Assembly (NCBI GenBank): GCA_002269645.1
Contig: NIVC01001187.1
Location: 248,001-312,000 of the forward strand
Length of the DNA stretch: 64,000 bases
Direction of reading: 5' to 3'
Source: Macrostomum lignano
Taxonomy: Eukaryota
Shown here in pieces: positions 4,910 to 61,600 of the stretch. Made by a program: the position numbers and the translations under genes. Position 1 is the first letter of the stretch. Every line of letters begins with the position of its first letter. Below the pieces are notes generated by a model. The model was not told where the DNA came from. It worked only from the letters and a program-made list of their open reading frames with translations, and ran no database searches.

Positions 4910-7900
4910 ATGAATAAGAAGAAACGCCAGTCAATGGTCCTTTCTGATTCTGGTATGCCTAAACATAACAATTATATTCTATCATATTATGCTTTTAAAT
5001 CATGTAGAGATATTTTTATTTTAAATCTTTGTTAACTTAATTTATGCAGATTCAGAATCGGAGAACTCAAGCCACAGGCAGGCTAAAAACTCAGAAAAAG
5101 CTTCAACCAGAGCCAAGCCATCTAGGAAGAAGCAGAAACAGCACCCTGAAACCATTTTTGTTGAGTCTGGTAAGACAGTTAAATTTGCTAAAATCAATCA
5201 TGAAGCTACAACCATTAATCAACTTGCTAGAATCATTATCACACATCACTAGAATCATCTATCACATCGCTAGAATACAATACAATACAATACAATAAAT
5301 ACAATGGCCACCGGCCACAAGTGGTCAGGAAAGGGGGGGACATTGTCAAAAAGCACGCTTAGCTGCGCAGTCTCTGATGAAGGTAGCGCCATTGATCTGA
5401 TCAGGCGCCCTGGCGTCTTCTGTCAGACAGTCGACGAACCTCCGGGTCCGCGCCTGCCCCCGCCGGAACGGGCCCTGCTGCGTGTACAGCAAGACCTCCT
5501 GCAGCGGCTCCGGGCAGTAGGACTCGGCGCGAATGACGTGGCCCGCCAGCTTCAGGCGGCGCTGTCGCAGGGTCACGCTGGGAGGGCTCAGCTTGGCCCG
5601 CTGGTAGAGAGCCTGGTTGGTGACGTGTTCGGCGTGACGGTGCACGCTGAAGGCAGCGCGCAGCAGGCTGGAGTGCGCCGCGTCCAGCTGGCGCTCCAGC
5701 ACATCCGTCATGGTCCAGGTCTCGGCGTTGTAGAAGAGCACCGTTTCCACCACCGCCTGGAACAGTCTGGTTCTCAGCTGGTCTGGCAGGGCGTCGCTTT
5801 GGAGCACGATGCGCACTGAGCGGAAAGCCGCCCACGCAAGCCCTCTGCGACGCCGCAGGTCCTCCTGGACGCTGGGCACGAGACCACCAAGGTACCGGAA
5901 CTGCTCACATCGGGGGAGCGGTGCTGCCGTTGCGCTGTCCATGCTGGGAAGGCGGATGACCGCTGGCAGATCGGCTGGCACAGTCAGGACCTCCGTCTTC
6001 TTGGCGTTGATCTTAAGGCCAACCTTCGCAGCGGCAGCAGCTAGGCCGTCGAGGAGGCGTTGAGCACCAGCAGCAGTGGATGCCAGCAGGGCGAGGTCAT
6101 CAGCATATCCGAGGACTGCCAGCCGCTTCTCCGGGTGCCGGCTGCTCGTTCGCCTGCATAGGATGTAGCCGTCCGAGTTGTCCGGTAGTCCTGTCCGCAG
6201 CACCCAGTCCAAGATGAGGATGAACAGGAAGGGAGCGAGGGTGTCTCCTTGCAGGACTCCGGATGAGGTGGTGAAGAAGTCGGAAAGGCCGTCAGGTGTG
6301 ATCACAGCAGCGTGCGTGTCGTGGTAGAGCGCCATCACTGCTGCAATCAGTTTCTCTGGCACGTTGTAGGCTCGGAGAACTAGTGGAATCACGCCTCGAG
6401 CCACCGAGTCGAAAGCCTTCAGGAAGTCGATGAACAGACAGAAAAGGTCCGACTGGCGAATGCGCGATTCCTCGATAATTCTCCGGAGCGCCAGAATTTG
6501 CGTGACTGTACCACGTCGTGGCCGGAACCCATTCTGCTCGTACCGCAGGTAAGGGTCCAGCACTGGCTGCAAGCGCGACAGTAGCAGCTTGTTGTGCAGC
6601 TTGGCGGCACAGGACATCAGGGAGATGCCCCGATGTTCTTCAATCTTGTTGGTGCCCGGCTTCTTGGGGATTCCGACGATATGTGCTCGGGTCCACTCCG
6701 GAGGTGCGACGCCAGTATCGAGAACGTTGTTGATCACCCTGGCGATCTCCTGGGCGACCTTGGGCAGTCTGAGCACCTCGTTGGGAACTTCGTCGGGACC
6801 CGTTGCCTTGCCGCCTGGGATCTTCTTGGCGAGCTGACAAACATCGATTGCGGTCACATGGCCGGTACAGAAATGATGCGGAGGCGGCAGTGGCGTGTCA
6901 GGGGGCAGCGCCAGCACATCAGGGAGCGCAGGTGGTGGCGCATTCACTATGCTAGCGAAAAAGTCCCGCAGGCTGTTCTTGCGCTCATCCGGCGTGTCCC
7001 CAACCAGGTTGAGCGCCGTGCGTTGCTTCCTGCCAGTGAGGGTGTTGATGGCAGTCCACACGGTGCCGCTTTTCCTGTCCGGGGCGGCGGAGGTGACGGC
7101 GCGGATGGCCTCGCTCACGGCAGCCAGCTGCTGCTCTTTGTAGACAATGGCGAGGGCCATTGTAGAATCATTAATGATCGCTAGAATCATTATCACACAT
7201 CACTAGAATCATCTATCACATTGCTAAAATCATTATCACACATCGCTAAAATCATCAATCACATCGCTAGAATCATCAATCACATCGCTAGAATCATCTA
7301 TCACATCGCTAAAATCATCAATCACATCGCTAGAATCATCAATCACATCGCTAGAATCATCAATCACATCGCTAGAATCATCAATCACATCGCTAGAATC
7401 ATCAATCACATCGCTAGAATCATCTATCACATCGCTAAAATCATCAATCACATCGCTAAAATCATCAATCACATCGCTAGAATCATCAATCACATCGCTA
7501 GAATCATCAATCACATCGCTAGAATCATCAATCACACCGCTAGAATCATCAATCACATCGCTAGAATCATCAATCACATCGCTAGAATCATCAATCACAT
7601 CGCTAAAATCATCAATCACATCGCTAGAATCATCAATCACATCGCTAAAATCATCAATCACATCGCTAGAATCATCAGTCACATTGCTAGAATCATCAGT
7701 CACATCGCTAGAATCATTATCACTCACATCACTAGAATCATCAATCACATTGCTAAAATCATCAATCACATCGCTAGAATCATCAGTCACATCGCTAGAA
7801 TCATCAGTCACATCGCTAGAATCATCAATCACATCGCTAGAATCATCTATCACATTGCTAAAATCATCAATCACATCGCTAGAATCATCAGTCACATCGC

Positions 7901-10900
7901 TAGAATCATCAATCACATCGCTAGAATCATCAGTCACATTGCTAGAATCATCAGTCACGTCGCTAGAATCATCAATCACATCGCTAGAATCATCAGTCAC
8001 ATCGCTAGAATCATCAATCACACCGCTAGAATCATCAATCACTTCGCTAGAATCATCAGTCACATCGCCAGAATCATCAATCATATCGCTAGAATCATCA
8101 ATCACATCGCTAGAATCATCAATCATATCGCTAGAATCATCAATCACATCGCTAGAATCATCAATCATATCGCTAGAATCATCAATCACATCGCTAGAAT
8201 CATCAATCATATCGCTAGAATCATCAATCACATCGCTAGAATCATCAATCATATCGCTAGAATCATCAATCACATCGCTAGAATCATTATCACTCACATC
8301 ACTAGAATCATCTATCACATCGCTAAAATCATCAGTCACATCGCTAGAATCATCAATCATATCGCTAGAATCATCAATCACATCGCTAGAATCATTATCA
8401 CTCACATCACTAGAATCATCTATCACATCGCTAAAATCATCAGTCACATCGCTAGAATCATCAATCATATCGCTAGAATCATCAATCACATCGCTAGAAT
8501 CATCAATCATATCGCTAGAATCATCAATCACATCGCTAGAATCATCAATCATATCGCTAGAATCATCAATCACATCGCTAGAATCATTATCACTCACATC
8601 ACTAGAATCATCTATCACATCGCTAAAATCATCAGTCACATCGCTAGAATCATCAATCATATCGCTAGAATCATCAATCACATCGCTAGAATCATCAATC
8701 ACATCGCTAGAATCATCAATCACATCGCTAGAATCATCAATCACATCGCTAGAATCATCAATCACATCGCTAGAATCATCAGTCACATTGCTAGAATAAT
8801 CAATAACATCACTAGAATCACCAGTCACTGCTAGAATCATCAATCACATCGCTAGAATCATCAGTCACATCGCTAGAATCACCAATCACATCGCTAGAAT
8901 CATCAATCACATCGATAGAATCATCAATCACATCGCTAGAATCATCAATCACATCGCTAGAATCATCAATCACACCGCTAGAATCATCAATCACATCGCT
9001 AGAATCATCAATCACACCGCTAGAATCATCAGTCACATCGCTAGAATCATCAATAACATCGCTAGAATCATCAATCATATCGCTAGAATCATCAATCACA
9101 TCGCTAGAATCATCAATCACACCGCTAGAATCATCAATCACATCGCTAGAATCATCGTCAAAAGCGCTGTTTCCCCTTTCCGCCGCTTTCAGATGGCGAG
9201 GCTTCGCCGCCGCAGTCGCCCAGCAAGCGGCAAGGCAAGGCGGCCGGCGGTGCCAATAAGCAGGCCGGCTCATCCTCGGGCAAGAAGTCGGCGGCGGCTA
9301 CAAAGAGTCCGAAGGCTGGCGGGCCGCCTGCGCAGAAGAACACTCTGGATAATTACTTCAGCAGGCTTGGAGGCGCTGCCGGTAATTCAGCCAAGCCAAG
9401 TGGCAGCGTTAGCGGCGGCGGCAGCAGCGCGGCTGCAGCCTCATCGGAGCGCGTGACAAAGAAGGTCAATCCGGCTGATTTTTTCACCAGCCCGCCAGCC
9501 AGCAGCTTGGCGCGCCAGAGTCCGACTGTTCAGTCTAAAAAAGCGTCTGTGAGTCCCTTGGAATTTCTGCCAGCAACTTCTGCATAGGGCTTTCTTTTTT
9601 CCCCGTGTGACTAATAAGATGTGTGACTAATTCATCAAGCGATGCAAATGCGCTTCAAACACAACTACAGTGACTCTAGCGCCTTAAATACGACGACTCT
9701 TTATACCGTCACCCCAGAGTCGCAGACAAAAAAACGCTTCAAAGTGACTCTTAGGCAACTTTTTGGTAACGATCTCGTCGTTTTACAGTCACTTCTTATT
9801 TTACATGTTATCTGCAACGACTCATTCATCCATTGTTTGGATCCGGCCCTTGACCCATTAGATTCCTCTTGACTCTAATGAGATCCTCTTGACCCATGAG
9901 ATCGTCCTCGATCCCCCCTTGGCTCATGGGATTGTCCTTGACCTACCTGATCCCCCTTGACTCACGGGATCGTCCTTGACCTCCCTTGACTCATGGGATT
10001 GTCCTTGACCTACCTGATCCCCCTTGACCTCCCTTGACTCATGGGATTGTCCTTGACCTACCTGATCCCCCTTGACTCACGGGATCGTCCTTGACCTCCC
10101 TTGACTCATGGGATTGTCCTTGACCTACCTGATCCCCCTTGACTCACGGGATCGTCCTTGACCTCCCTTGACTCATGGGATTGTCCTTGACCTACCTGAT
10201 CCCGCTTGACTCATGGAATCGTCCTTGACTCATTGACTCAAACTCACTTCTTGACTCAGACAGCGGCTTTGGGATTCAGGCTCTGAAGTGTCAAACTTTT
10301 GTGCATCGCAAATTCCCCTCCCCTGCAGACTGCTTACGCGGAAGACCCCGACATCATCGAGGCGTCGTTTGTTGCTTCGCCGCCGCGGTCAGCGCGGAAA
10401 TCGTCAGCATCCACCGCGGCGTCCTCGTCCGATTCTAGAGCGAAGCCCGGCCCAGCCCAGCATGAGAAGCCGCTCCTGACTCAGCAGCAGCAGCAACGCG
10501 GAAGCGAAGGTGCCTCCGCGCCGCAGCCACCTGCCGGGCCAGAGAAATCTCCGTTGAAACGGTCGGCAACAACGCCCGAGGCAAAGCGGTCCAGCTATCT
10601 GGCTTACCTGCATAGGGACGGGCCGAAACACCTGGGCGAATTGCGCCTGCCAAAGGCAGGTGGATAGTTATTTAAAGTTTTATTGATCATAGCTGCTTTG
10701 TGCGGCTCGTAAGATTTGGTCGCAGCTCTCATAGATCCTTCACCGCAACTCTCTCGGATACCGAAGCCATAGCCCTCCCAAATCCCTAAGATTCCACCCT
10801 TCCAGATCCCAAACATTCCACCCTTCCAGATCCCAAACATTCCACCCTTCCAGATCCTTAAGATTCCACCCTTCCAGATCCCAAACATTCCACCCTTCCA

Positions 10901-13900
10901 GATCCCTAAGATTTTAACCTTCCAGATCCCTAAGAGCCCCTTCCAGATCCCTAAGATTCCACCCTTCCAGATCCCATCCACCCTTCCAGATCCCTAAGAT
11001 TCCACTCTTCCAGATCCCTAAGATTCCACCCTTCCAGATCCCTAAAATTTTAACCTTCCAGATCCCTAAGATTCCACTCTTCCAGATCCCTAAGATTCCA
11101 CCCTTCCAGATCCCTAAAATTTTAACCTTCCAGATCCCTAAGATCCCCTTCCAGATCCTAAACATTCCACCCTTCCAGATCCCAAAGATTCCACCCTTCC
11201 AGATCCCAAACATTCCACTCTTCCAGCTCCTAAACATTCCACCCTTCCAGATCCCAAAGATTCCACCCTTCCAGATCCCAAAATTTAAACCTTCCAGATC
11301 CCAAAATTTTAACCTTCCAGATCCCTAAGATACCCGTCCAGATCCTAAACATTCCACCCTTCCAGCTCCTAAACATTCCACCCTTCCAGATCCCTAAGAT
11401 TCCACCCTTCCAGATCCCTAATATTCCACCCTTCCAGATCCCTAATATTCTACCCTTCCAGATCCCTAATATTCCACCCTTCCAGATCCCTAAAATTTTA
11501 ACCTTCCAGATCTCTAAGATTCCACCCTTCCAGATCCCTAACCATATCAACTCTCTTTACCCTAACGAATTCACCCCACAGGCGAAGCCAAACAGCCTCA
11601 GCGGCATGACAATCGTGGTCACTGGCGTGCTGGACTACGTCGAGAAGGAGGCCTGCGAAGCTCTGCTGCATCAGTGCGGCGCCAAGGTTACCAAAAGCGT
11701 CAGCAAGCGAACCAGCATGCTGGTGGTCGGCCGGGAGCCCGGAGCCAGCAAGCTGGACAAGGCCAAGCAGGCCGGGGTTCGCTGCTGCCCGGAGAAGGAA
11801 TTCTACAGTTTCCTGTGCGAGAAGCTTGGACAGCCGCCAGAAGCTGATCCAGACGATGAGGCGGTGGAAATGATGGGCGTCGAACCCGGAGCTGGAACTG
11901 GAGCCGGCGCTGATCAGCGCAGCAATGGATCCTCGGGTGCTAGAGATGTGGAGCGCAGCGGAGGTGGCAGAAGCCAGGCTGAGGAGCGCAGCGGCGGCGG
12001 CAGAAGCCAGGCTGAGGAGCGCAGCGGCGGCGGCAGAAGCCAGGCTGAGGAGCGCAGCGGCGGTGGCAGAAGCCAGGCTGAGGAGCGCAGCGGCGGCGGC
12101 AGAAGCCAGGCTGAGGAGCGCAGCGGCGGCGGCAGAAGCCAGGCTGAGGAGCGCAGCGGCGGCGGCAGAAGCCAGGCTGAGGAGCGCAGCGGCGGTGGCA
12201 GAAGCCAGGCTGAGGAGCGCAGCGGCGGCGGCAGAAGCCAGGCTGAGGAGCGCAGCGGCGGCGGCAGAAGCCAGGCTGAGGAGCGCAGCGGCGGCGGCAG
12301 AAGCCAGGCTGAGGAGCGCAGCGGAGGCGGCAGAAGCCAGGCTAAAGATCAGAGAGAGGGCGGGAAAGCCGGAGCGGAGGGCCAGCCGCAGCAGCAGCTG
12401 ATGTGGGTGGACAAATACAAGCCGCGCTCGCTGAAGCAGATAATCGGCCAGTCTGGTCCGGCCAGCTGTGCCAGCAAGCTGGTGGCCTGGCTGTCCAGCT
12501 GGCACAGGCACCTGGCCAGCGGGGTGAAGCGCGGCGTGGCGCAGCCGTTTCAGCGCTTCAACAACGACGGCTCCGCCTTGAAGGCGGCGCTGCTGTCCGG
12601 TCCGCCCGGCATCGGCAAGACGACCACCGCCACTCTGGCCTGCAAGGAGCTCGGCTTCGAGTGCCTGGAGTTGAACGCCTCGGACACTCGCAACAAAAGA
12701 TCTCTGCACGAGATTGTCGGCGAAGCGCTGGGCACCTTTTCTGTTGGCGCCATGTTCGGCGGCGGCGGTGGCGGAGGCGGCACCGAGGAAGGTCGCCGAC
12801 GCTGCATCGTTATGGATGAGGTGGACGGCATGGCCGGCAACGAGGACCGGGGCGGAGTGGCCGAGCTCATCCAGCTGATCAAGGCCAGCCAGGTACGGCG
12901 TGTACTTTTGTGAATTTTGCGGCGCACCTGGATCTCAAACCGAAGCTTTTCTATTGGGTCTGTCCTGATGGCACCTGAATCTTGTCTACAAGCACCTGAA
13001 TCTCCCCTATAACACCTGAATCTCCCCTAAAACACCTGAAGTTCTACTCAAACCCCTGAAGTTCTACTCAAGCCCCTGAAGCTCCACTACAACCCCTGAA
13101 GCTCCACTACAACCCCTGAAGCTCCACTACAACCCCTGAAGCTCCACTACAACCCCCTGAAGCTCCACTAAAATCTCCTAAAGCTCAATTACAACCCCTG
13201 AAGCTCCACTAAACCCCCTGAAGCTCTACTACAACCCCCTGAAGCTCCACTACAAACGCCTGCCCTGGATGTTCTCTGTCGGCCTCTGAATTTAATTTGT
13301 CACACCTGCTCCCAAACCTCTTAGACTCAGCCTAAACTGACTACTTACAGGAGCTAAACGGCTAATTTTGCTAAATCATCTCTGCCAGGTGCCAATAATC
13401 TGCATCTGCAACGACCGCAACCACATGAAGATGCGGTCGCTGGCCAACTATTGTTTCGATCTGCGCTTCCAGCGGCCGAGGCCGGAGCAGATCCGAGCGG
13501 CCGCCATGTCCATCGCCAGCCGCGAGGGCCTCAAAGTTGATGCGCAAGCCCTGCTGGACGTTATCAACGCTTCTAACAATGATGTCCGACAGACCATTCA
13601 CAACCTGCAGGTGAAACTGGGACTTCGTGTGCTGTTTTTTTGCGGATACTGTTGCACTGTTTCAAGTTTTTGGATTTCAGACTTCGAAACTAAGATTTCG
13701 GGTTTCAGGATTTGGGCTTGGGATTCCAGGACTGGGACTTGGGATTCCAGGACTGGGCCTTGGGATTCCAGGACTGGGACTTGGGATTCCAGGACTGGCC
13801 TTGGGATTCCAGGACTGGCCTTGGGATTCCACATAGATAATAAAAACAGTGTTTTAGTATCTGTGGGATTCCAGGACTGGCCTTGGGATTCCAGGACTGG

Positions 13901-20385: not shown

Positions 20386-21330
20386 GTAAAGTTTTCTGAA
20401 CACTAAACATTCTTAAATCAAAGACCTGCGCATGAAGTTCAGCTAAACATTTATTTGTAGCGAGAACTGCAGTGCTCAAAGAACAGTCGTACATATGCAC
20501 CACCATCAGGAATGAAAATCTGTGGAATTCAATAATCTGTCACCAATCTGCTGAACTGATTTCGTCAGGGGTGACGCCATGGATTATTTTGGTGGAGCCG
20601 ACAACCCAAGAAATCTACATGAGAAAATTCCTACATTATGTTGGGAATCAGTTATAACAAATCAGCACTCATTTTAGCGCCACCAAATGTTTTACTTTTA
20701 TAAAATATAAATGTTTCATAATTTATTGCCTGGAGCAAAATTATTGATTTCCATAACGGCTCACAAAAGCGGGGTGGACAAAACATTGGCATGTTCCCCA
20801 GCGATTTTCAGTCACTGGCCTGAAACTCTCCATCACAGCGACATCATGAGAGCTCTTGTATAAAGGATACTAAGATGATTTGAAGGCCCGTACTGAACAA
20901 AAGCTTAGGCATTAAACTGAAACAGTGATTATTGCATGCTTTCACTTCACTCTTCAGTGTGAGTAAACTTGAGTCCCGAAATTCTTAGCCCAAATCGATC
21001 GCCTTAGCAACTATTCGCATAGTTGAGGAGTTGCACGTGTGGATCCTGCTGTCAAACAAGCGCCACTTCAGTCCTGTGTTAGCTCAGCACAGCGAAAGTC
21101 ACCAAAACGACAAGGTCGTAAATGTCTTGAGAGCAAGGAGGGAGTTTGACTACTTTTGCACCAGTCAGCAGTCGAACCAAACAAACAGAACGGCATTCAA
21201 GCCGCCCGAACTTCAAGTGCAGAGCAGTGGGCAAACAAATGTTAAAAATCCGTCAATCTACCAGCTCAGCAGTTGCCATCCGACAGGTGAAGAAACGGCC
21301 ACCCGCAGGGATGTCAAACTCCAACAACAG

Positions 21331-21375
21331 CATAAAAGTAAGTCCGTTTCGGGGCCTCCGAAATTCAATCCAGTC
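21331..21375 (+). promoter_or_regulatory. Possible TATA-like box (CATAAAAG) with an initiator-like sequence about 30 nt downstream
   Basis: CATAAAAG at 21331-21338, then ATTCAATCCAGTC, then the ATG at 21396. Positional inference only. Confidence 0.3.
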
Positions 21376-21395
21376 AGCACCGAAACAGCTCAAAC

Positions 21396-23848
21396 ATGAG
21401 ACTTATTCTGTTGGCAGCTTGCGCCGCGCTGCTTTGCACGCTAGTGGTAAGTTGAACTCTGTTGCACACAACTATTCAGCACTAACTCCAGCTTCAATTC
21501 GAATAATTACGAAAATCATTTGCACTTTTCAGCTCTCAGCGCCACCAACAAATGCGAAGAATAAGCTGAAGAAGCCAGCAGCCGCTAACGCTGCGGCCAC
21601 CGCTGGATCCGCTAAGAAGCCCGCTATGGCTCAGAAGCCTTGCAAAAGACCGCCAAGGAGGAGCGCAGAGGAAAGACGGGGCAGAAGAAGCGAGAGGCGG
21701 AGTCGCCGCCAATCCAGGCGGCAGAACCGACGCGCTGCAAGACGTGCCCGTAGAAGCCGCGATGTGAGAAGAAGAGGCGGCCGTCGTGTCAGACGCGCCA
21801 GACGTAACGGTAGACGCGCTGCAAGACGTGCCCGCAGAAGCCGCGATGTGAGAAGAAGAGGCGGCCGTCGTGTGAGACGTGCCAGACGTAACGGTAGACG
21901 CGCTGCAAGACGTGCCAGACGTAACGGTAGACGTGCTGCAAGACGTGCCAGACGTAACGGTAGACGCGCTGCAAGACGTACTCGCAGAAGCCGCGATGTG
22001 AGAAGAGGCGGCCGTCGTGTGAGACGCGCCAGACGTAACGGTAGACGCGCTGCAAGACGTGCTCGCAGAAGCCGCGATGTGAGAAGAGGCGGCCGTCGTG
22101 TCAGACGCGCCAGACGTAACGGTAGACGCGCTGCAAGACGTGCCAGACGTAACGGTAGACGCGCTGCAAGACGTGCCCGCAGAAGCCGCGATGTGAGAAG
22201 AGGCGGCCGTCGTGTGAGACGCGCCAGACGTAACGGTAGACGCGCTGCAAGACGTGCCAGACGTAACGGTAGACGTGCTGCAAGACGTACTCGCAGAAGC
22301 CGCGATGTGAGAAGAAGAGGCGGCCGTCGTGTCAGACGCGCCAGACGTAACGGTAGACGCGCTGCAAGACGTGCCAGACGTAACGGTAGACGCGCTGCAA
22401 GACGTGCCCGCAGAAGCCGCGATGTGAGAAGAAGAGGCGGCCGTCGTGTGAGACGCGCCAGACGTAACGGTAGACGCGCTGCAAGACGTGCCCGCAGAAG
22501 CCGCGATGTGAGAAGAAGAGGCGGCCGTCGTGTCAGACGCGCCAGACGTAACGGTAGACGCGCTGCAAGACGTGCCAGACGTAACGGTAGACGCGCTGCA
22601 AGACGTGCCCGCAGAAGCCGCGATGTGAGAAGAAGAGGCGGCCGTCGTGTGAGACGCGCCAGACGTAACGGTAGACGCGCTGCAAGACGTGCCCGCAGAA
22701 GCCGCGATGTGAGAAGAAGAGGCGGCCGTCGTGTCAGACGCGCCAGACGTAACGGTAGACGCGCTGCAAGACGTGCCCGCAGAAGCCGCGATGTGAGAAG
22801 AAGAGGCGGCCGTCGTGTCAGACGCGCCAGACGTAACGGTAGACGCGCTGCAAGACGTGCCAGACGTAACGGTAGACGCGCTGCAAGACGTGCCCGCAGA
22901 AGCCGCGATGTGAGAAGAAGAGGCGGCCGTCGTGTGAGACGCGCCAGACGTAACGGTAGACGCGCTGCAAGACGTGCCCGCAGAAGCCGCGATGTGAGAA
23001 GAAGAGGCGGCCGTCGTGTCAGACGCGCCAGACGTAACGGTAGACGCGCTGCAAGACGTGCCCGCAGAAGCCGCGATGTGAGAAGAAGAGGCGGCCGTCG
23101 TGTCAGACGCGCCAGACGTAACGGTAGACGCGCTGCAAGACGTGCCCGCAGAAGCCGCGATGTGAGAAGAAGAGGCGGCCGTCGTGTCAGACGCGCCAGA
23201 CGTAACGGTAGACGCGCTGCAAGACGTGCCCGCAGAAGCCGCGATGTGAGAAGAAGAGGCGGCCGTCGTGTCAGACGCGCCAGACGTAACGGTAGACGCG
23301 CTGCAAGACGTGCCCGCAGAAGCCGCGATGTGAGAAGAAGAGGCGGCCGTCGTGTCAGACGCGCCAGACGTAACGGTAGACGCGCTGCAAGACGTGCCCG
23401 CAGAAGCCGCGATGTGAGAAGAAGAGGCGGCCGTCGTGTCAGACGCGCCAGACGTAACGGTAGACGCGCTGCAAGACGTGCCCGCAGAAGCCGCGATGTG
23501 AGAAGAAGAGGCGGCCGTCGTGTGAGACGCGCCAGACGTAACGGTAGACGCGCTGCAAGACGTGCCAGACGTAACGGTAGACGTGCTGCAAGACGTGCCC
23601 GCAGAAGCCGCGATGTGAGAAGAAGAGGCGGCCGTCGTGTCAGACGCGCCAGACGTAACGGTAGACGCGCTGCAAGACGTGCCCGCAGAAGCCGCGATGT
23701 GAGAAGAGGCGGCCGTCGTGTCAGACGCGCCAGACGTAACGGTAGACGCGCTGCAAGACGTGCCCGCAGAAGCCGCGATGTGAGAAGAGGCGGCCGTCGT
23801 GTGAGACGCGCCAGACGTAACGGTAGACGCGCTGCAAGACGCGGTTAA
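21396..23848 (+). CDS. Uncharacterised secreted arginine-rich repeat protein, 788 aa, 2 exons
   Basis: Exon 1 (21396-21446) encodes MRLILLAACAALLCTLV. An 86-nt intron runs GTAAGT...TTTTCAG. Exon 2 (21533-23848) joins in phase 0 and reads LSAPPTNAKNKLKK..., then tandem NGRRAARRARR and SRDVRRRGGRRVRRARR units. The frame is preserved across about 2.1 kb. AATAAA at 23913. Confidence 0.8.
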
Positions 23849-25119
23849 ATGGAGTGTGTTTCCACGATAGCCATATGATTCGGTTTTGGACCTTTCTTTT
23901 GTGGGTGTTTTAAATAAATGTTGGTTTATTTAAAATGTTGGTCATAAGATGCTCGTACCTATTCTGTGTTTCTTTGTTTGCTTTTTCAATTTTATTGCTG
24001 GAAATCTGAAATCGGCCACCTTTTTTCAGCATGCGAGTTTCTGCAAACTGCGATATCGAGAAAATCTGATATGCGTTGCCTGAAATTTGATTGTACATGT
24101 AGAAGTACAGAAAATTAAACCACTTTTGATTGGTGTGATCGACCAATGAATATATAATTATGTTTTGTGCCATTGTTATGCAATCATTTATAAATTTATT
24201 CCATAAGTGACAAGTAAAATGCGAACAAAAATTAACAGCAAAACAGCGCAAATTTTGTGTGTCCTCAAATTAGAATTTAGAATGAGCGAGTCAAACTAAC
24301 AGACCAGTTAGTTCTAATTCGGTAAAGTACATGTTGTTCACGTTTTTATTATTGCTTGGAAATATTACGATTTAACGTTATAGATATTAAGTTTCTTTAG
24401 TGTGCTGGTGAACGCATCTCTGTCCTCCCGTCTGAATCAGATTTCCAGCTTTTGAGTTCTGGATCCCAAATTTATCTCTGTTATCTCAAAGCCTAGGTTT
24501 GGAACTCGGAAGGGCGACTAGTGCCCTAGCTTTAAATTTTATTTAGGAAACTCTTACACACACCTGGTCGTAAATCAATGTTATTAAGGTAACAATCATA
24601 CTTTAATAGCATAATTTGATAGTTTTACATCGCCTTATTGGCAATTCCTGTCTGAAAGCCAGATATGCTGGAGTGTTGAGTCGTCGGGGCAGATGAGCGT
24701 GGTCAGGGGCAGGCAGAGAGACTGAAAAGTAGAGCACACATTTATAAATGAACGGCATGCTGCGAGAGAGAGGACGAAAACTTCTCTTTACCATGGTATC
24801 GTTCCCGGGCCGGGGTTTCAGTGTACATGGCTTGGGGGGTGGGGGTAAAATTCTAACCCCAACCCTGCCTGCTACAAACGTACATTAAAAGCCCTCTAGC
24901 CGTCTGCCGTCTGTGGCCTTGCCCAAGTGTCCTATGTACATCTATTTGATTTCATTCTCTTGCCAGTGTGTGGGCCGCCCTCCCCTCCCCCACTAGGCTT
25001 AGAAAAGATTCCACGGCAGTTAAACATGACGTGTCAGTAGAGACCTTTTATTTTCTCAATTTAATAACATTGGCCTAACTGGCATAACTGCCTATTCTAC
25101 TCGTGTATTTGAATTAAAA

Positions 25120-25782
25120 ATGAACTTCAGTCTATTGATACTTTTGTCCCTATTGGGCGCGGCCACTGCGTTCGACAAATATCCGAAAGAATTTGTTTTT
25201 GAGCTACCAGATAATGAGGAATTTTGCTTCTACGAGGAATTCGCGCAGGACGCCACAAAAGAAGCGTTTAACACAGTGTTTCGCGTGATTCGCGGCGGTA
25301 ACAATGACGTGGACTTTGCAATCACTGCTCCGGACAACCAGAAAGTTTACGAGAAGCAGAAGCAACACTTTGATGAGCACGAGCACACTTTCCGTCCTGG
25401 CACTTATTCCTTCTGCTTTGGCAACAAGTTTTCAACCATCACGCACAAGCAGATCTACTTCGCCCTGAACCGCAAACGGCCGGAAAGTCTGGCTGAAGAG
25501 GCCGGAGCAACCAACGTACCGACAGCAATGTCTCTGTTGCAGACCAAGATGGAGGCCATCCACGAATATCTGGTCACTGTGGAGACGGTGCAGTCAATCT
25601 ACAAGGTGCGCGAAGCCGAGGGACGCGAGATTAGCGAGGATCTGAACGAGCGCGTCATGGTATTCAGCGCCATTCTGGCCATGGCTGTGGTGGTTTGCGG
25701 CTTCGGACAGGTTGTGGTGCTCAGGACTTTCTTCTCAGACAAAAAATCCGTCTCTTATCCTCGCTATCCTACCAAGGCTTGA
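25120..25782 (+). CDS. TMED7: p24/emp24-gp25L family cargo receptor, TMED7/TMED3-like (gamma subfamily), intronless CDS
   Basis: Signal peptide, GOLD domain (FELPDNEEFCFY, GGNNDVD, YSFCFGNKFSTITHKQIYF), coiled coil, C-terminal TM and QV...FF tail. TMED7 versus TMED3 is not resolvable by eye. Confidence 0.9.
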   Translation: MNFSLLILLSLLGAATAFDKYPKEFVFELPDNEEFCFYEEFAQDATKEAFNTVFRVIRGGNNDVDFAITAPDNQKVYEKQKQHFDEHEHTFRPGTYSFCFGNKFSTITHKQIYFALNRKRPESLAEEAGATNVPTAMSLLQTKMEAIHEYLVTVETVQSIYKVREAEGREISEDLNERVMVFSAILAMAVVVCGFGQVVVLRTFFSDKKSVSYPRYPTKA

Positions 25783-29139: not shown

Positions 29140-29950
29140 CACACACTCTCAAGTAGCAAATGCTGCATGGTAACTCTGCACTTTACAGCTGGGTGAAAAC
29201 CTTGAACCATGAAGCAATGTAGAGTTAAGTGTCCACAAATTGTTCCGAGTGCATGGGTCGATCGAATCGAACCCCCGACCTTTCAATCGTGATTCCGACC
29301 ATAAGCGTAGGAACGTTTCAAAAAGTGGGGGGCAGGTTCAGTGACAGATTTAGGGGGGGGGGCACAGGGTGCACGCCCCATCGAGTTATATTTTTTTATA
29401 CGGAAAATGCACATTATCATGTACCGATTATTTTCAGAATCAGTCAGCAGTCAGAAACTCATTTTATAAAGCACCGCAGGCACTCATTTTAGCGCCGTAG
29501 GCCCGCATTTTGGCGCCGCAGGCCCTTATTTTAGCGCCGCAGGCACTCATTTTGGCGCCGCAGGCCCTCATTTTAGCGCGGCAGGCACTCATTTTAGCGC
29601 CGCAGGAACTCATTTTGGCGCCGCAGGCACTCATTTTGGCGCCGCAGGCCCTCATTTTGGCGCCGCAGGCCCTCATTTTAGCGCCGCAGACACTCATTTT
29701 AGCGCCGCAGGCACTCAATTTGGCGCTGCAGGCGCTATGTTTTGTCGCCCTGCAGCAAAATGTATTCATGCAAAGCAGAAAAAAACCAAAAATAAGCAAG
29801 AAGTCTACATTTTACACTTAAAATGTGGAGGGGCCAGATACCATTACTGGCCCCCCCCCATTTTAGAAAGTGGGGGGGGCATGCCCCACTGCCCGCCCCC
29901 GTTCCTACGCCTATGATTCCGACGCTCTAGCCACTAGGCTAGGCTACAAC
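29140..29950 (-). mobile_element. tRNA-derived SINE interrupted by a MITE
   Basis: A-box TAGCCTAGTGG (29941-29931) and B-box GGTTCGATTC (29273-29264) are at tRNA-like spacing once 29300-29923 is removed. The downstream body contains ACTTAAC...TTGCTTC...CACCCAGCTGTAAA, which resembles metazoan SINE core domains. Confidence 0.7.
29300..29915. mobile_element. 616-bp hAT-type MITE carrying an internal 21-bp minisatellite (about 29480-29735)
   Basis: 16-bp TIRs CATAAGCGTAGGAACG / CGTTCCTACGCCTATG (1 mismatch). Perfect 8-bp TSD ATTCCGAC at 29292-29299 and 29916-29923. Confidence 0.9.
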
Positions 29951-50064: not shown

Positions 50065-50850
50065 CAGGGACGTCGCCACCAGGGGGGGGGACAGGGGGAC
50101 ATGTCCCCTCAGTAAAGTCTATGGGGGCACATGCCAGTGTTTGTTCGTTATGGAAATCAATAATTTTGCTTCAGGGCGACAAAATATAGCGCCTGCGGGC
50201 TGCGGCACTAAAATGAGTTCCTGCGGCGCCAAAATGAGTATCTGCGGCGCCAAAATGAGTGTCTGCGGCGCTAAAATGAGTTCCTGCGGCGCCAAAATGA
50301 ACGCCTGCGGCGCCAAAATGAGTGCCTGCGGCGCCAAAATGAGTGCCTGCGGCGCCAAAATGAGTGCCTGCGGCGCCAAAATGAGTGCCTAAGGCGCCAA
50401 AATGAGTGCCTGCGGCGCCAAAATGAGTGCCTGCGGCGCCAAAATGAGTGCCTGAGGCGCCAAAATGAGTGCCTGAGGCGCCAAAATGAGTGCCTGAGGC
50501 GCCAAAATGAGTGCCTGCGGCGCCAAAATGAATGCCTGCGGCGCCAAAATGAGTGCCTGCGGCGCCAAAATGAATGCCTGCGGCGCCAAAATGAGTGCCT
50601 GAGGCGCCAAAATGAGTGCCTGTGGCGACAAAATGAGTGCCTGCGGCGCCAAAATGAATGCCTGCGGCGCCAAAATGAGTGCCTGCGGCGCCAAAATGAA
50701 TGCCTGCGGCGCCAAAATGAGCGCCTGCGGCGCCAAAATGAGCGCTGACAACACCGATTCTGAAAATAAGGTACATGTAGGAATTTTGACATGTACATGT
50801 CGAACTCTTGGCTTTGTCCCCCCGCCATAAAATCCATGGCGACGCCCCTC
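50065..50850. mobile_element. MITE-like element carrying a 21-bp minisatellite (about 50205-50745, GCGCCAAAATGAGTGCCTGCG)
   Basis: Imperfect TIRs CAGGGACGTCGCCA / TGGCGACGCCCCTC with G/C-run subterminal motifs. No TSD is visible. Confidence 0.65.
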
Positions 50851-55642: not shown

Positions 55643-58600
55643 TCACAGCGATGTTTTACGACGCCGGGACTTGGAGAAAGCGAATCCTTCGTTGCCGCCG
55701 CCGGTGTCAGCGAAAGTGCCGCCGCTCCGGTCGCCCTCGATGGCGTCGTCGGCCGAGTTGAGCGCCTCGATGAAGCGGTCCAGCTTCTCCTCGGCCAGGC
55801 GCAGGCTGTGGATGTCCTCGGCCAGCTGGACACTGCGGCCGCGCAGCGACTCCCGTAGCCGGCCGGGCTCCGCCGCCAGGCCAGTGAGGGCGTCGCCGAC
55901 GGCCCGCTCAAGTCGGCGCGCCTCGATGTTGACGGCCTGCTGGCGCAGCGCCGAGCAGGTGGCGTTGAGCATGCGGCCGACCCGGTGGAAATACGGCACC
56001 GCGGCGCAGGCGGCGGCGGTGGACAGGCGCTGCTGATAGTGGTAGAACATCCTGGCGCACTGGTCGCAGTTGGCCAGCCCGGCCCGCAGAGCCATCTGGC
56101 GACGGACCAGCGGCCAGGCCTCGCGCAGCTCCTCGTCTGTGACCGCGGCGCCGGCTGCCTCGCCGGGGCTTCTATGGCTGGCGAAGGAGCGCCTGGCGGC
56201 AGCGAGGTCAGCAGCCGACAGACTCGCAGACGGAATGCCGGCTGTCAGGGGAGTGGGCGGGGAGATTGGAATACTCAAGGAGGACAGATTGAATGGGAAT
56301 TAGGAACACAGTTGCAACTTAAAGGGGATTAGAAAAGTCACAGTGACAGGGGATCAGGACAGTCACAGTGACAGGGGATCAGGACAGTCACATGGGGATC
56401 AGGACAGTCACAGGGGATCAGGACAGTCACAGGGGGGTCAGGACAGCCACAGGGGGATCAGGACAGTCACATGGGGATCAGGACAGTCACAGGGGATCAG
56501 GACAGTCACAGGGGGGTCAGGACAGCCACAGGGGGATCAGAACAGTCACAGGGGATCAGGACAGTCACAGGGGGGTCAGGACAGTCACATGGGGATCAGG
56601 ACAGTCACAGGGGGATCAAAACAGTCACAGGGGGATCAGGACAGTCACAGGGGGATCAGGACAGTCACAGGGGGATCAGGACAGTCACAGGGGGGTCAGG
56701 ACAGATCACAGGGGGATCAGGACAGTCACATGGGGATCAGGACAGTCACATGGGGATCAGGACAGTCACAGGGGGGTCAGGACAGTCACAGTGGCAGGGG
56801 ATCAGGACAGTCACAGGGGGATCAGGACAGTCACAGGGGATCAGGACAGTCACATGGGGATCAGGACAGTCACAGGGGGATCAGGACAGTCACAGGGAGA
56901 TCAGGACAGTCACATGGGGATCAGGACAGTCACATGGGGATCAGGACAGTCACAGGGGGATCAGGACAGTCACAGTGGCAGGGGATCAGGACAGTCACAG
57001 GGGGATCAGGACAGTCACATGGGGATCAGGACAGTTACATGGGGATCAGGACAGTCACATGGGGATCAGGACAGTTACATGGGGATCAGGACAGTCACAG
57101 GGGATCAGGACAGTCACAGGGGATCAGGACAGTCACAGTGGCAGGGGATCAGGACAGTCACAGGGGATCAGGACAGTCACAGGGGATCAGGACAGTCACA
57201 GGGGATCAGGACAGTCACAGGGGATCAGGACAGTCACAGGGGATCAGGACAGTCACAGGGGATCATGACAGTCACAGGGGATCAGGACAGTCACAGGTAA
57301 TCTCACCTGAGCCAGCCGCAGTCCGCAGCGCCTGCACCAGCCTGCTCAGCCGGTCCTGCTCAGGCGTGGGCGCCTTCAGCCACTTGGCCCAGCGCTGCCA
57401 GCCGGAGGGCCCACAGACCTGCGCCAGCTCGGCCTCCGTCTCGGCCAGCCGGTGCCGCAGCGCCTGCCTGAGCAGCGCCACCGCCGAGTCCCAGTCGGCG
57501 CGGCCGGGCTCGGCGCCCTGGTCGAGCAGAGCCGCCGACTGCAGCACCCGGAGAGCCGCCTCGGCCTTGGGATCCCAGCGGTGCGCCTGCACGGCCTCGG
57601 CTCGCACGGCGGAGCAGAGCGGCTCCAGCACGGGGTCGCCGCCGGCACCTGCGGGCAGGTCGGCGAACTGCTGGTACAGCACGGAGCGGCCCGCGGTCAC
57701 GCACTGGCCGGGCAGGTCCGACTCCACCCAGCGGCGCAGGCCGATGTCAAGCCGAGTCTGCAGCAGCTCCGGCCTGGCCTCTGGCGCTGAATTGGCCGAC
57801 TCAGCCTCCAGTAGAAGGTCCAGGGCCTGCGACAGCAGCGGACCGGAGAGGCTGTCGCGAAATGCCGCCTCCCAGCGCTGAGGGAGGGCCGGGTGGTGGA
57901 GGACTGCTGAAGTACTTCCGCTTTCACCATGGATAGATGCTGCAATCCGCCCCCTCCCGATAGAGGCTGCCATCCGCCCCCGATCGAGGCTGCCATCCGC
58001 CCCCGATCGAGGCTGCCATCCGCCCCCGATCGAGGCTGCCATCCGCCCTCCGATCGAGGCTGCCATCCGCCCCCCGATACACAACACCACTCCCTAAACT
58101 CAGCCACCCGCCCACCCCATACTCAGCCACCGCCTTAGCTCACACAGAGCCACCGCCCACCCCGCATTCAGCAACCGCCCCAGCCCGCACTCAGCAGCCG
58201 CCCCAGCCCGCACTCAGCAACCGCCCCAGCCCACACTGAGCCACCGCCCACCCCGCACTCAGCAACCGCCCCAGCCCACACTCAGCCACCGCCCACCCCG
58301 CACTCAGCAACCACCCAAGCCCGCACTCAGTAACCGCCCCAGCCCACACTCAGCCACCGCCCACCCCGCACTCAGCAACCGCCCAAGCCCGCACTCAGCA
58401 ACCGCCCAAGCCCGCACTCAGTAACCGCCCTAGCCCGCACTCAGCAACCGCCCCAGCCCGCACTCGGCAAGCTCAAGTCCCACCTCAGCCGGCAGAGCGC
58501 TCAGTGCGATGACCTCATCCAGCAGGTCCGACCGCGCCTTCTCAAACAGCTCAGCCCTGGAGCACTGCCGCCTGCCGGGGAAGCTGTGCTTCCACTCCGT

Positions 58601-61600
58601 CTCCAGGTTAAAGCGAAGCGCCTTCAACGAATCCGCCTGAGCCTCGACCGACTCCCGCACCAGGGCCCAGAATCGCCTGCTGACGGCGCGGGCCATGTTG
58701 GCCGCGGTGACCTGATTGGGCGAGAGGCGGCCATCTTTGAACAGGCGCGAGCTGGCGAAGTACTCGGCTTCGTGTCGTTCAATTGCTTCAACAGATTCGT
58801 CCTGACTGCCCGACCCTGTGACCACGGCGAAGTAGCCCAGAGCCTTCAGCGGCAGGAGGCGGCCTGCCAGCAGCTTGGCGACTCGGTCAGGAGACACCTG
58901 CGGCAGGATGGGAGAAGAATGGGACGGATGGGTGAGGTAAGAGGGCGGATGGGAGAAATTAGGGGGTGGACAGGAGATCTCAGGGGCGGACGGGAGATGT
59001 CAGGTGCGGATGGTAGATGTCACGTGTGGACGGGAGATGTCAGGTGCGGACGGGAGATGTCAGGTGCGGACGGGAGATGTCAGGGGCGGATGGGAGATGT
59101 CAGGTGCGGACGGGAGATGTCAGGTGCGGATGGGAGATGTCAGGTGCGGACGGGAGATGTCAGGTGCGGACGGGAGATGTCAGGGGCGGACGGGAGATGT
59201 CAGGTGCGGACGGGAGATATCAGGGGCGGATGGGAGATGTCAGGGGCGGACGGGAGATGTCAGGTGCGGACGGGAGATGTCAGGGGCGGACGGGAGATGT
59301 CAGGTGCGGACGGGAGATATCAGGGGCGGATGGGAGATGTCAGGGGCGGACGGGAGATGTCAGGTGCGGACGGGAGATGTCAGGTGCGGACGGGAGATGT
59401 CAGGGGCGGATGGGAGATGTCAGGTGCGGATGGGAGATGTCAGTGGCGGACGGGAAATGTCACGTGCGGACGGGAGATATCAGGGAAAAATGGGAGATGT
59501 CAGGTGCGGATGGGAGATGTCTGGTGCGGACGGGAGATGTCAGGGACGGATGGGAGATGTCAGGGGCGGACGGGAGATGTCAGGGGCGGATGTGAGATGT
59601 CAGGGGCGGACGGGAGATGTCAGGGGCGAACGGGAGATGTCAGGGGCGGATGGGAGATGTCAGGGGCGGACGGGAGATGTCAGGGGCGGATGGGAGATGT
59701 CAGGGGCGGACGGAGATGTCAGGGGCGGATGAGATTTTAGAAGGTGTGGATCGGATTATGGAAGGGATCAGATGGAAGTAGAGGGCGGCTGTGAGCGAGG
59801 AACAAGCCACACCCAGTGCTAACTGCAGCCTCACCTTGTCCCTCTCGGCCAAGTCCATCTTGGTGAGCACAAATATGGTTCGCCTGCCGGCGGGTCGTGC
59901 TTGGCCACCAGGTCGAAGGCGTTGGACCGTTCTGGGTCGACGCAGGCGTCGGCCACGCACAGGATGATGGCGTTGGGGTTGCGCATGTACTGGCGGGCCA
60001 GCTGGCGGATGGACTCGCCGGTCTGCGCGGCCATGCCGGCCGTCTCGGTGCTGATGATGCCGGGCAGGTCCACCAGCACCATGCGGGGCAGGCCGGGGCC
60101 CTGCACCGACAGCGGGATCGCCTCAGTGGAGACAGCGGCATCCGGGCCGGACGAGCGGACAGCGGCGCGCATTCGGCGCTCGATGGCGTCGCGCAGGGCG
60201 GCCAGCTCGGACTCTTTGGTCAGGTCGAACTCTCTAGGGAGGGTGTTGATGGGTCATAGTGGGTCAGGTCATACCGGAGCCTGCTGGGTCATAGTGGGTC
60301 AGGTCATACCGGAGCCTGCTGGGTCATAGTGGGTCAGGTCATACCGAAACTGCTGGGTCATAGTGGGTCAGGTCATACCGGAGCCTGCTGGGTCATAGTG
60401 GGTCAGGTCATACCGGAGCCTGCTGGGTCATAGTGGGTCAGGTCATACCGGACCGTGCTTGGTCATAGTGGGTCAGGTCATACCGGAGCCTGCTGGGTCA
60501 TAGTGGGTCAGGTCATACCGAAACTGCTGGGTCATAGTGGGTCAGGTCATACCGGAGCCTGCTGGGTCATAGTGGGTCAGGTCATACCGGAGCCTGCTGG
60601 GTCATAGTGGGTCAGGGTTATACCGGACCGTGCTTGGTCATAAAGGGATTGGGTAGGGGTCATAGAGGGTCAGGTCATACGAGACCGGCATGGGGTCATA
60701 GTGGGTCAGGTCATACCAGACCGACACGGGGTCATAGTGAATTAGGTCATACCAGACCGACACGGGGTCATAGTGAATTAGGTCATACCACAAGTTGAAG
60801 TCATAAATAATGGCGTCATAAACCCTAAATTGATGACGTCATGAAGACATTAAGTCCCTTCCACACCTGTCCGGATCGTCCTTAAATCTGGCCACATGGT
60901 AGGGCCCGTCAGCCAGGGTCACCTGCACCGGCGCCCGCGTCATCATCTCGCCGGCGCCGCGAGGAAACAGCCGAGCCCGGGCCACAGCCTCCAGCACGGA
61001 GGTCTTGCCGGAGCTCTGGTCGCCGATGACCACCACTCGCGGCAGATGATCGGCGGCAGAGAATTTGGCGTCCCGCTCGGACAGGGCGTCCAGCACTTCG
61101 CTGTACATGTCGATCAGGGACTTCCGAGCCGACCGGGAGCCGCGGCCGGGGCCGCCCAGCCGCAGCTCGGCCAGCCGGCGGCGAAGCTCGCGAGCTTCGG
61201 CCTCGAGCGAGGCGGCCTCGCGTTGGTAGCGAATCTCCAGCTCCTCCAGCTGCTGGGCGAGCTCCGTCGGCGCGTCTGCGTCGAGCGCCGCCGCCGAGGA
61301 CTCGGCGCCTCCGTCGGCTTTGTTGGAGGCGTCTGCGACGAATGCAAGAAAATATTCTGCGTTGTTTTCACAAAAATTAGCGATAATATCACCAACAGAC
61401 TACTCATTATACTTAAGTAGCAAATTAAGCTTCGTAATATTTAACTTTTTGAACTTACCCGATGGACGCTGGACAAGTGACTTTAAACTGGCAACGGAGT
61501 TCTTCAACCAGCCCTGCAGAAGACAATTATAGATAAGGAGATTGCGAGTAGTTCAGCTGCAATAACTATGATTGTAGTGCGCAGAAACCTGCCAGCAAAG

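Follow-up and report, generated by a model that had tools for sequence, protein, structure and literature searches.

Here, we propose that a repeat-bearing locus in the genome of the flatworm Macrostomum lignano is a genuine, transcribed two-exon gene, the product of which may be a non-globular polycation that is routed through the endoplasmic reticulum (ER) and condenses gland secretions or makes them cohere. We give this reading about an even chance. The locus, which we call gene X, lies on the plus strand of the window, by which we mean the whole stretch of DNA analysed (64,000 nucleotides (nt); contig NIVC01001187.1, positions 248,001 to 312,000). Our proposal is based on the structure of the gene, its transcript-based annotation, the conservation of its paralogues, the composition of the encoded protein, and the absence of any recognisable domain. 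From these observations we infer the targeting of the product to the ER, its secretion, its role in complexing polyanions, and its origin in glands.

The spliced coding sequence (CDS) of gene X (21396-21446 joined to 21533-23848) comprises 2367 nt, that is, 788 codons followed by TAA. Its ATG (21396) has an A at position -3, and the annotated 5' ends of the three copies of the gene in M. lignano map to window positions 21363, 21375, and 21378, which are 33, 21, and 18 nt ahead of the ATG and 25-47 nt downstream of the TATA-like box CATAAAAG. The intron contains a branch-point-like ACTAAC at 21481-21486 and, being 86 nt long (2 mod 3), shifts reading from the frame of the ATG to that of the repeat array. 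Exon 2 opens with LSAPPTNAKNKLKKPAAANAAATAGSAKKPAMAQKPCKRPP, which is followed by the degenerate stretch RRSAEERRGRRSERRSRRQSRRQ, and the linker contains KKPAMAQKPCKRPP. The program-made list of open reading frames (ORFs) holds a single entry over this locus, a TTG-started frame of 900 amino acids (aa) at 21146-23848.

In GenBank, the M. lignano assembly Mlig_3_7 (GCA_002269645.1, NIVC01001187.1) has a plus-strand gene at window positions 21378-23848 with a product of 324 aa. This annotation was built exclusively from RNA-seq and transcript assemblies, using StringTie/TACO, a BLAT-mapped de novo transcriptome, and TBONE boundaries, with the CDS called by TransDecoder (PMC5730564). Given such an RNA-only pipeline, the gene call implies transcript evidence, though not evidence of translation.

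Gene X is flanked in the window by RFC1 upstream and by TMED downstream (p24/TMED ORF, 25120-25782), an ORF that matches a single contig, NIVC01001187.1. The TMED protein has two near-identical cluster mates in M. lignano, encoded at two further loci, L002 (NIVC01001409.1) and L003 (NIVC01002996.1). The gene order RFC1, X, TMED is kept at both, and both have an annotated paralogue of gene X (L002, 5334-8734; L003, 7263-8746). The three copies agree in every base of exon 1 and of the 86-nt intron, and also have the same reading frame and the same ...RRG-TAA end. The spliced genomic ORFs differ in length, with 788 aa and 53 modules in the window copy, 1097 aa and 77 modules in L002, and 454 aa and 30 modules in L003.

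The lengths of the annotated genes and products bear directly on the intron. At L003, the annotated gene is 1484 nt long and its product 465 aa; as 1484 = 3 x 466 + 86, the sole gap in this model is 86 nt, which matches the predicted intron length, and the 465-aa product consists of an 11-residue, 5'-partial leader plus the 454 aa of the spliced ORF. The L002 gene, with a product of 880 aa, gives 3401 = 3 x 881 + 86 + 8 x 84, and the window copy gives 2471 = 3 x 325 + 86 + 16 x 84 + 2 x 33. The extra gaps are thus whole modules, which suggests a collapse of repeats in transcript models made from short reads. Read in this way, 788 aa is a better description of the product of the window copy than 324 aa, and the GenBank products (880, 465, and 324 aa for L002, L003, and the window copy, against spliced ORFs of 1097, 454, and 788 aa) raise the possibility that repeat proteins may be systematically truncated in the GenBank annotation of M. 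lignano. Reconstructed 324-aa candidates (assuming seamless repeat deletions or GT-AG gaps) and the 465-aa and 454-aa L003 products had no exact match in the protein collection.

These results bear on the original prediction, which had been made from the letters of the DNA and had described a hidden signal peptide ahead of a secreted polycation, perhaps an undescribed gland protein, overlaid in the ORF track by nothing but a 900-aa Arg-rich frame. Its spliced model (ATG at 21396, a 17-codon exon, an 86-nt intron, and 788 aa) was recovered on rejoining the sequence, and both the L003 length arithmetic and the GenBank gene fit it; the TATA-like box and the AATAAA 65 nt after the stop were read directly, and the ORF track is as was stated. 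A secretory route is likewise favoured by the N-terminus, the sole hydrophobic segment of the protein, and the prediction that no folded domain is present was borne out. However, "hidden" and "undescribed" were overstated, in that GenBank already holds a model in the ATG frame with the same stop, on which the 788-aa product improves by undoing the collapse to 324 aa.

Conservation among the three copies is strongest at the 5' end of the gene. In the block that begins 60 nt ahead of the TATA box and extends through the linker, 1 of 451 alignment columns is variable, as against 30 of 602 in the flanks (Fisher p = 8e-7), and no variation is seen in its first 125 columns, up to the ATG. At the start of exon 2, the copies differ by one non-synonymous change (T23P) and by a single 3-nt indel. 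Since the intron is invariant too, this pattern points to constraint on, or homogenisation of, the 5' unit, and not specifically to coding selection. A synteny search beyond M. lignano by way of TMED orthologues reached a nearest match outside the species that was 52% identical and lay on a 1.2-kb contig.

The array itself is built from a small number of modules. In the window copy these are NGRRAARRARR (33 nt; N), present 29 times, SRDVRRRGGRRVRRARR (51 nt; S), present 17 times, a 48-nt variant (s), present 5 times, which is the 51-nt module minus one AGA, and two ten-residue edge units, in the order ?SNSNNNsNsNNsNNSNNSNSNNSNSNSNNSNSNSNSNSNSNSNSNNSNsNs?. Tandem Repeats Finder reports periods of 33, 84, 81, and 117 and, where the array is regular, matches of 97-99%; a 27-nt core motif occurs 30 times in the window, always within 21806-23845, where chance would give 0 copies. 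The main period of 28 aa contains 16 Arg and one Asp, and every length variant of the array is a multiple of 3. Module parsing therefore bears out what had been predicted of the two modules, their period, and their lengths.

Each 28-aa period of the array (21725-23845) also contains the tripeptides NGR and RDV. NGR deamidates to isoDGR, which is an integrin ligand in vertebrates; its presence here is probably coincidental for an Arg-rich repeat. The window copy further lacks, at its end (23819-23848), the terminal degenerate unit ARRNRRRAA[R/T]RG that is found in L002 and L003, and finishes instead in a hybrid, NGRRAARRG, consistent with loss of that unit by recombination.

The Arg content of the array exceeds what its base composition would provide. 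None of 20,000 dinucleotide-preserving shuffles of the 84-nt unit reached 16 Arg codons out of 28 in any frame (maximum 14, mean 7.7). The Arg codons are a fixed mix of AGA, CGC, and CGT, and no single triplet is repeated. The array is also the longest fully open one in the window, in which each of the other three arrays that measure about 2 kb is interrupted in all frames.

Variation within the arrays is informative as to what may be under constraint. The 154 modules parsed from the three arrays show 20 substitution types, 10 of them synonymous and 10 non-synonymous (five being R to K), with 11 of the 20 at codon position 3; the synonymous share compares with 28-31% expected from random mutation (P = 0.03-0.05). 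The prediction that most substitutions are synonymous thus holds for the window copy alone (four of five types) but not for the three copies together. Several variants are private to one copy and amplified there (TGRR, AKL, VKR, and RKR in L002; RLARR and RRRSG in L003), and RRTRR is found in the window copy and in L003. This amplification implies that the arrays evolve by internal duplication and that conservative change is tolerated, and as far as can be judged from sequence, the constraint would lie on composition and frame and not on the exact sequence.

The protein that results is extreme in composition. After removal of 19 residues, the mature protein of the window copy (about 770 residues) is 53.6% Arg, 16.3% Ala, 10.0% Gly, 5.7% Val, and 1.0% Lys, with a net charge of +395, one Cys, and no aromatic residues. 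Arg makes up 50-54% of the mature proteins of the three copies, in runs of at most 3. Residues 3-18 have a mean Kyte-Doolittle hydropathy of 2.9, compared with 0.65 for the best 11-residue stretch beyond residue 25. As the N-terminus is the sole hydrophobic segment, a secretory route is the most economical reading, and the predicted signal peptide is probably cleaved after Ser19, where V-L-S followed by A-P fits the -3/-1 rule.

That no folded domain would be recognisable had also been predicted, and the searches agree. A Pfam scan of the first 212 aa gave 0 families at E<=0.01, and a PDB sequence search gave 0 matches at E<=1. AlphaFold2, run on the same 212 aa, returned a helix at residues 3-18, a linker with a predicted local distance difference test score (pLDDT) below 50 in residues 26-51, and a continuous high-pLDDT helix at 62-211, with a predicted template modelling score (pTM) of 0.36. 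We take the product to be without a globular fold on the basis of this model, and do not trust the long repeat helix in a chain of like charges. Homology searches with the N-terminus plus one repeat period, and with the N-terminus alone, found no relatives, nor did they return the gene's own paralogues, and a HMMER scan of 1.84 billion representatives gave one borderline, unrelated match (P0004, rich in Glu, Arg, and Lys; E = 6e-4). Because the searches missed even the M. lignano paralogues, little weight should be placed on these negatives, such low-complexity products being apparently absent from the libraries. The peptide and DNA motifs of gene X were not found in the supplements of two papers (PMC6410801, PMC5977470), and our reading of the literature on Macrostomum arginine-rich proteins and protamine, rhabdite basic proteins, and cell atlases found no description of the gene.

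In light of these features, how might gene X work? The TATA-type promoter would drive transcription of an mRNA whose leader is very short, and the first ATG would start a cleavable signal peptide, so that the nascent chain could be threaded co-translationally into the ER. Poly-Arg binds RNA and ribosomes and is hazardous in the cytosol; threading into the ER would also keep a chain of about +395 away from both. The mature chain would then begin with a linker of about 40 residues, rich in Lys, Ala, and Pro and containing one Cys, and continue with Arg-rich modules, the number of which (30-77) varies with the gene copy. Such a product may act by charge, as a polyvalent polycation complexing polyanions (sulfated or acidic glycans and glycoproteins), and this complexing could serve to condense the dense phase inside a secretory granule and, once the product is out in sea water, to provide cohesion or surface binding. 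The length of the array would change as whole modules of 33, 48, and 51 nt are gained or lost in unequal exchange, each gene copy amplifying its own variants, and selection would act on composition and frame and not on exact sequence.

A bolder form of this proposal, which we offer tentatively and with the odds somewhat against it, is that of an "extracellular protamine": a poly-Arg protein that passes through the ER and condenses the coacervate or dense-core phase of a gland granule (rhabdite, cement, prostate, or adhesive, for example), and that is released into sea water to swell, to glue, or to neutralise polyanions, with array length tuning the material. If this is true, no secreted structural protein so far described from animals would, to our knowledge, be richer in Arg.

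Several points weigh against an ER-routed polycation. Lys makes up only about 1% of the protein, unlike the Lys/Arg/Gly-rich regions of adhesive proteins. The annotation is no proof of translation, since TransDecoder picks the longest ORF. The invariant 5' block could reflect gene conversion or a very recent duplication instead of purifying selection, and the excess of synonymous changes is weak, with several of the changes at CpG sites. With 76 RX[KR]R motifs in the mature window protein, an intact polycation would need to evade proprotein convertases, and the four Lys within 15 residues after the hydrophobic (h-) region could reduce or invert translocation.

The furin-type motifs lead to the first of the alternatives, that gene X encodes a polyprotein which furin/PC-type convertases cut after RARR and RVRR into short cationic peptides, approximately NGRRAARRA(RR) and SRDVRRRGGRRV(RR), with an antimicrobial, membrane-active, or signalling function. 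There are 76, 106, and 36 RX[KR]R motifs in the mature proteins of the window copy, L002, and L003, respectively; they stand at module boundaries, so that cleavage would free the modules themselves, and the signal peptide that such a precursor requires is predicted. On the other hand, there is scant cargo between the basic clusters (AA, V, A, NG, SRDV, GG), with the longest non-basic stretches being 2 residues (AA, GG, NG, DV), and little specific sequence would be left after carboxypeptidase trimming; a neuropeptide precursor was rejected for the same want of cargo between basic sites. The protein is also without the acidic spacers or pro-regions usual in precursors of cationic peptides, having one Asp per 28 aa, and non-synonymous variants are tolerated and amplified in the arrays, which argues against a precise bioactive peptide. 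Moreover, the cohesive adhesive protein Mlig-ap1 shows that in this very species highly basic repeat proteins can be secreted and can persist in footprints. We therefore consider a polyprotein unlikely.

Could the locus instead be a transcribed minisatellite with a long ORF but without a functional protein, an annotation artefact in a genome pervaded by repeats? The window gives reason to ask, as 27 large minisatellite arrays (periods of 15-84 nt) make up 33% of its 64 kb, at least one frame is fully open in 16 of the 27, and the program-made ORF list is mostly derived from repeats. For the gene X array, 3 of 6 frames are open. In this window, then, finding a minisatellite open in some frame is no evidence of coding. 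Nor did we count the conserved frame in favour of selection: with module lengths all divisible by 3, unequal exchange keeps the frame automatically, and the sole small indel is one AGA inside an (AGA)3 run, which slips by 3 nt anyway. The absence of stops over the 20 substitution events is equally uninformative (P(no stop) = 0.5-0.7), the CDS calls come from TransDecoder, and no homologue was found in the searches run. A gene on the minus strand was considered and rejected, because neither of the two frames open on that strand contains a Met (21300-23950 translated).

Set against an untranslated minisatellite is the fact that, of the three open frames, only the gene X frame is tied to an ATG, by way of a canonical, in-phase intron. 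This frame comes with a TATA box, a short leader, a hydrophobic exon opened by the first ATG, a stop at the end of the array, and an AATAAA, and its 5' block is near-invariant in three copies with diverging flanks. In addition, the Arg density lies above all 20,000 shuffles, the Arg codons are heterogeneous, and comparably long arrays elsewhere in the window are closed. Taken together, these make an untranslated minisatellite improbable.

A further alternative is that of a protamine-like sperm nuclear basic protein that condenses chromatin, with a hydrophobic leader that is either non-functional for secretion or removed as a pro-piece. The Arg content of more than 50%, the Ala, Gly, Val, and Ser spacers, and the RRRGGRR motifs resemble those of fish protamines. 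The helix that AlphaFold2 places in the repeats might also fit, protamines likewise becoming ordered only on binding DNA. No M. lignano protamine has been described, and the sole Macrostomum paper mentioning protamines that we found refers to mouse Prm1. However, a 16-residue hydrophobic N-terminus on an exon of its own, kept in three copies, would be expected to be captured by the signal recognition particle, and the products, at 454-1097 aa, are far beyond the size range of protamines. No Pfam family was found (E<=0.01, first 212 aa), and Arg runs do not exceed 3. We regard this explanation, too, as having little probability.

Finally, an uncleaved signal-anchor, in which the N-terminal helix tethers the polycation to a membrane (in the vesicle lumen, at the cell surface, or on the cytosolic face), is very improbable: the flank after the h-region is indeed more positive than the N-terminal flank, which under the charge-difference rule can favour the opposite orientation, and Pro occupies positions 21-22 just after the best cleavage site, but the h-region spans only about 16 residues, V-L-S before A fits the -3/-1 rule, and none of the first seven residues past the h-region carries a charge.

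The coordinates of gene X are collected in Table 1.

Table 1. Features of gene X in the window, with positions counted from its first letter
Feature	Position	Strand	Description
TATA-like box CATAAAAG	21331-21338	+	Core promoter; read from sequence
5' untranslated region	21363-21395	+	Short, 18-33 nt; no upstream ATG
Exon 1, coding part	21396-21446	+	17 codons encoding MRLILLAACAALLCTLV; n- and h-regions of predicted signal peptide
Intron	21447-21532	+	86 nt, GTAAGT...ACTAAC...TTTTCAG, phase 0
Exon 2, start	21533-21724	+	Likely c-region (LS before APP), Lys/Ala/Pro-rich linker with one Cys, degenerate Arg/Ser/Glu/Gln stretch RRSAEERRGRRSERRSRRQSRRQ
Coding minisatellite	21725-23845	+	53 modules: 33-nt N, 51-nt S, 48-nt s
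Stop codon TAA	23846-23848	+	Common to three copies; annotated gene ends here
AATAAA polyadenylation signal	23913-23918	+	65 nt past stop; kept in three copies

Elsewhere in the window, the RFC1 ORF (11606-12913, plus strand) contains a 33-nt minisatellite of 11.9 copies at 11950-12343 (98% matches), which encodes (ERSGGGRSQAE)n between the BRCT and AAA+ domains and is the second in-frame coding minisatellite of the window. On the minus strand, an ORF of 616 aa at 5346-7196 with an RVT_1 match (E = 3.6e-29) abuts an array of 94 copies of a 21-nt unit (7163-9156), and most likely comes from a retrotransposon. A single 21-nt unit (20/21 identical after rotation and reverse complementation) forms the arrays at 29470-29733 and 50200-50742, which are in opposite orientation and about 20 kb apart. 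Minus-strand ORFs at 55643-58897 match OPA1_C and, weakly, Dynamin_M, with minisatellites between them (20 nt x 47 at 56340-57297, for instance), and look like exons of an OPA1-like dynamin gene.

If secreted intact, the product of gene X would be a compact, natural, arginine-only polycation of a secretory cell, in a species in which RNA interference and transgenesis are available. Its main appeal lies in its tractability for work on bioadhesion and on how granules condense. It raises the question of how a chain of some +400 charges is translated and trafficked without stalling of the ribosome or shredding by convertases. It could inform bio-inspired coacervate adhesives and, should the stronger claim of an extracellular protamine be true, would provide a natural model for arginine-driven complex coacervation. 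If it proves to be processed or nuclear instead, gene X would be a first candidate cationic peptide precursor or protamine in M. lignano. The locus also illustrates how repeat proteins come out too short in the GenBank models of this repeat-rich genome, with 324 aa annotated where 788 aa are encoded.

How does gene X compare with known systems? Protamines likewise have more than 50% Arg and short neutral spacers (Ala, Ser, Val, Gly), with local similarity of the RRRGGRR type, but they are small and nuclear and lack a signal peptide, whereas the gene X products have 454-1097 aa, a hydrophobic N-terminal signal, and no Pfam match. As is predicted for gene X, precursors of the silaffin (sil1p) and sandcastle-worm cement types have a signal peptide and tandem basic modules set at dibasic motifs, and act by charge-driven assembly or coacervation. 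These proteins, from organisms unrelated to M. lignano, differ from gene X in carrying heavy modification and in being rich in Lys/Ser or Lys/His/Gly, and no homology to gene X was found.

Gene X is most akin to the secreted, basic, low-complexity repeat proteins of flatworm glands, the locus itself being known as a GenBank model for which we found no characterising paper. Mile-ap3a/b of Minona ileanae is an independent protein rich in Gly, Arg, and Lys, the knock-down of which removes the electron-dense core of the adhesive vesicles (PMC6745481). It and gene X are alike as stand-alone flatworm proteins with long, low-complexity, strongly basic repeats, which in both defeated short-read transcript assembly, and its part in granule condensation is of the kind that we propose for gene X. 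Compared by description, however, Mile-ap3 is Gly-Arg-Lys rich, whereas gene X relies on Arg alone, with Lys at about 1% and spacers of Ala, Gly, and Val; the former belongs to Proseriata and the latter to Macrostomorpha.

In M. lignano itself, Mlig-ap1 has more than 3,600 aa of secreted Lys/Arg-rich (KR) regions with an isoelectric point above 14, and heparin blocks attachment (PMC6410801). The KR-regions A-C of this protein and gene X share the species, secretion (predicted for gene X), and extremely basic repeats. The KR regions of Mlig-ap1 flank a folded core (C-type lectin, vWD, C8, TIL, and EGF) and have a Lys-rich motif such as SRKPRRKNRKSRKP, whereas gene X has no Pfam domain (in its first 212 aa, the remainder consisting of the same modules) and a different repeat. 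The composition of gene X (Arg 53.6%, Gly 10.0%, Lys 1.0%) is basic as well, but is not the Lys/Arg mix of the adhesive proteins (PMC6410801, PMC6745481). For Mlig-ap1, the KR regions are proposed to act electrostatically, with polyanions (heparin or a releasing factor, for example) opposing them (PMC6410801, PMC8621496). Gene X thus bears on how the contents of flatworm glands are packed and released, and would extend the charge-based model of attachment and release drawn from Mlig-ap1 and Mile-ap3.

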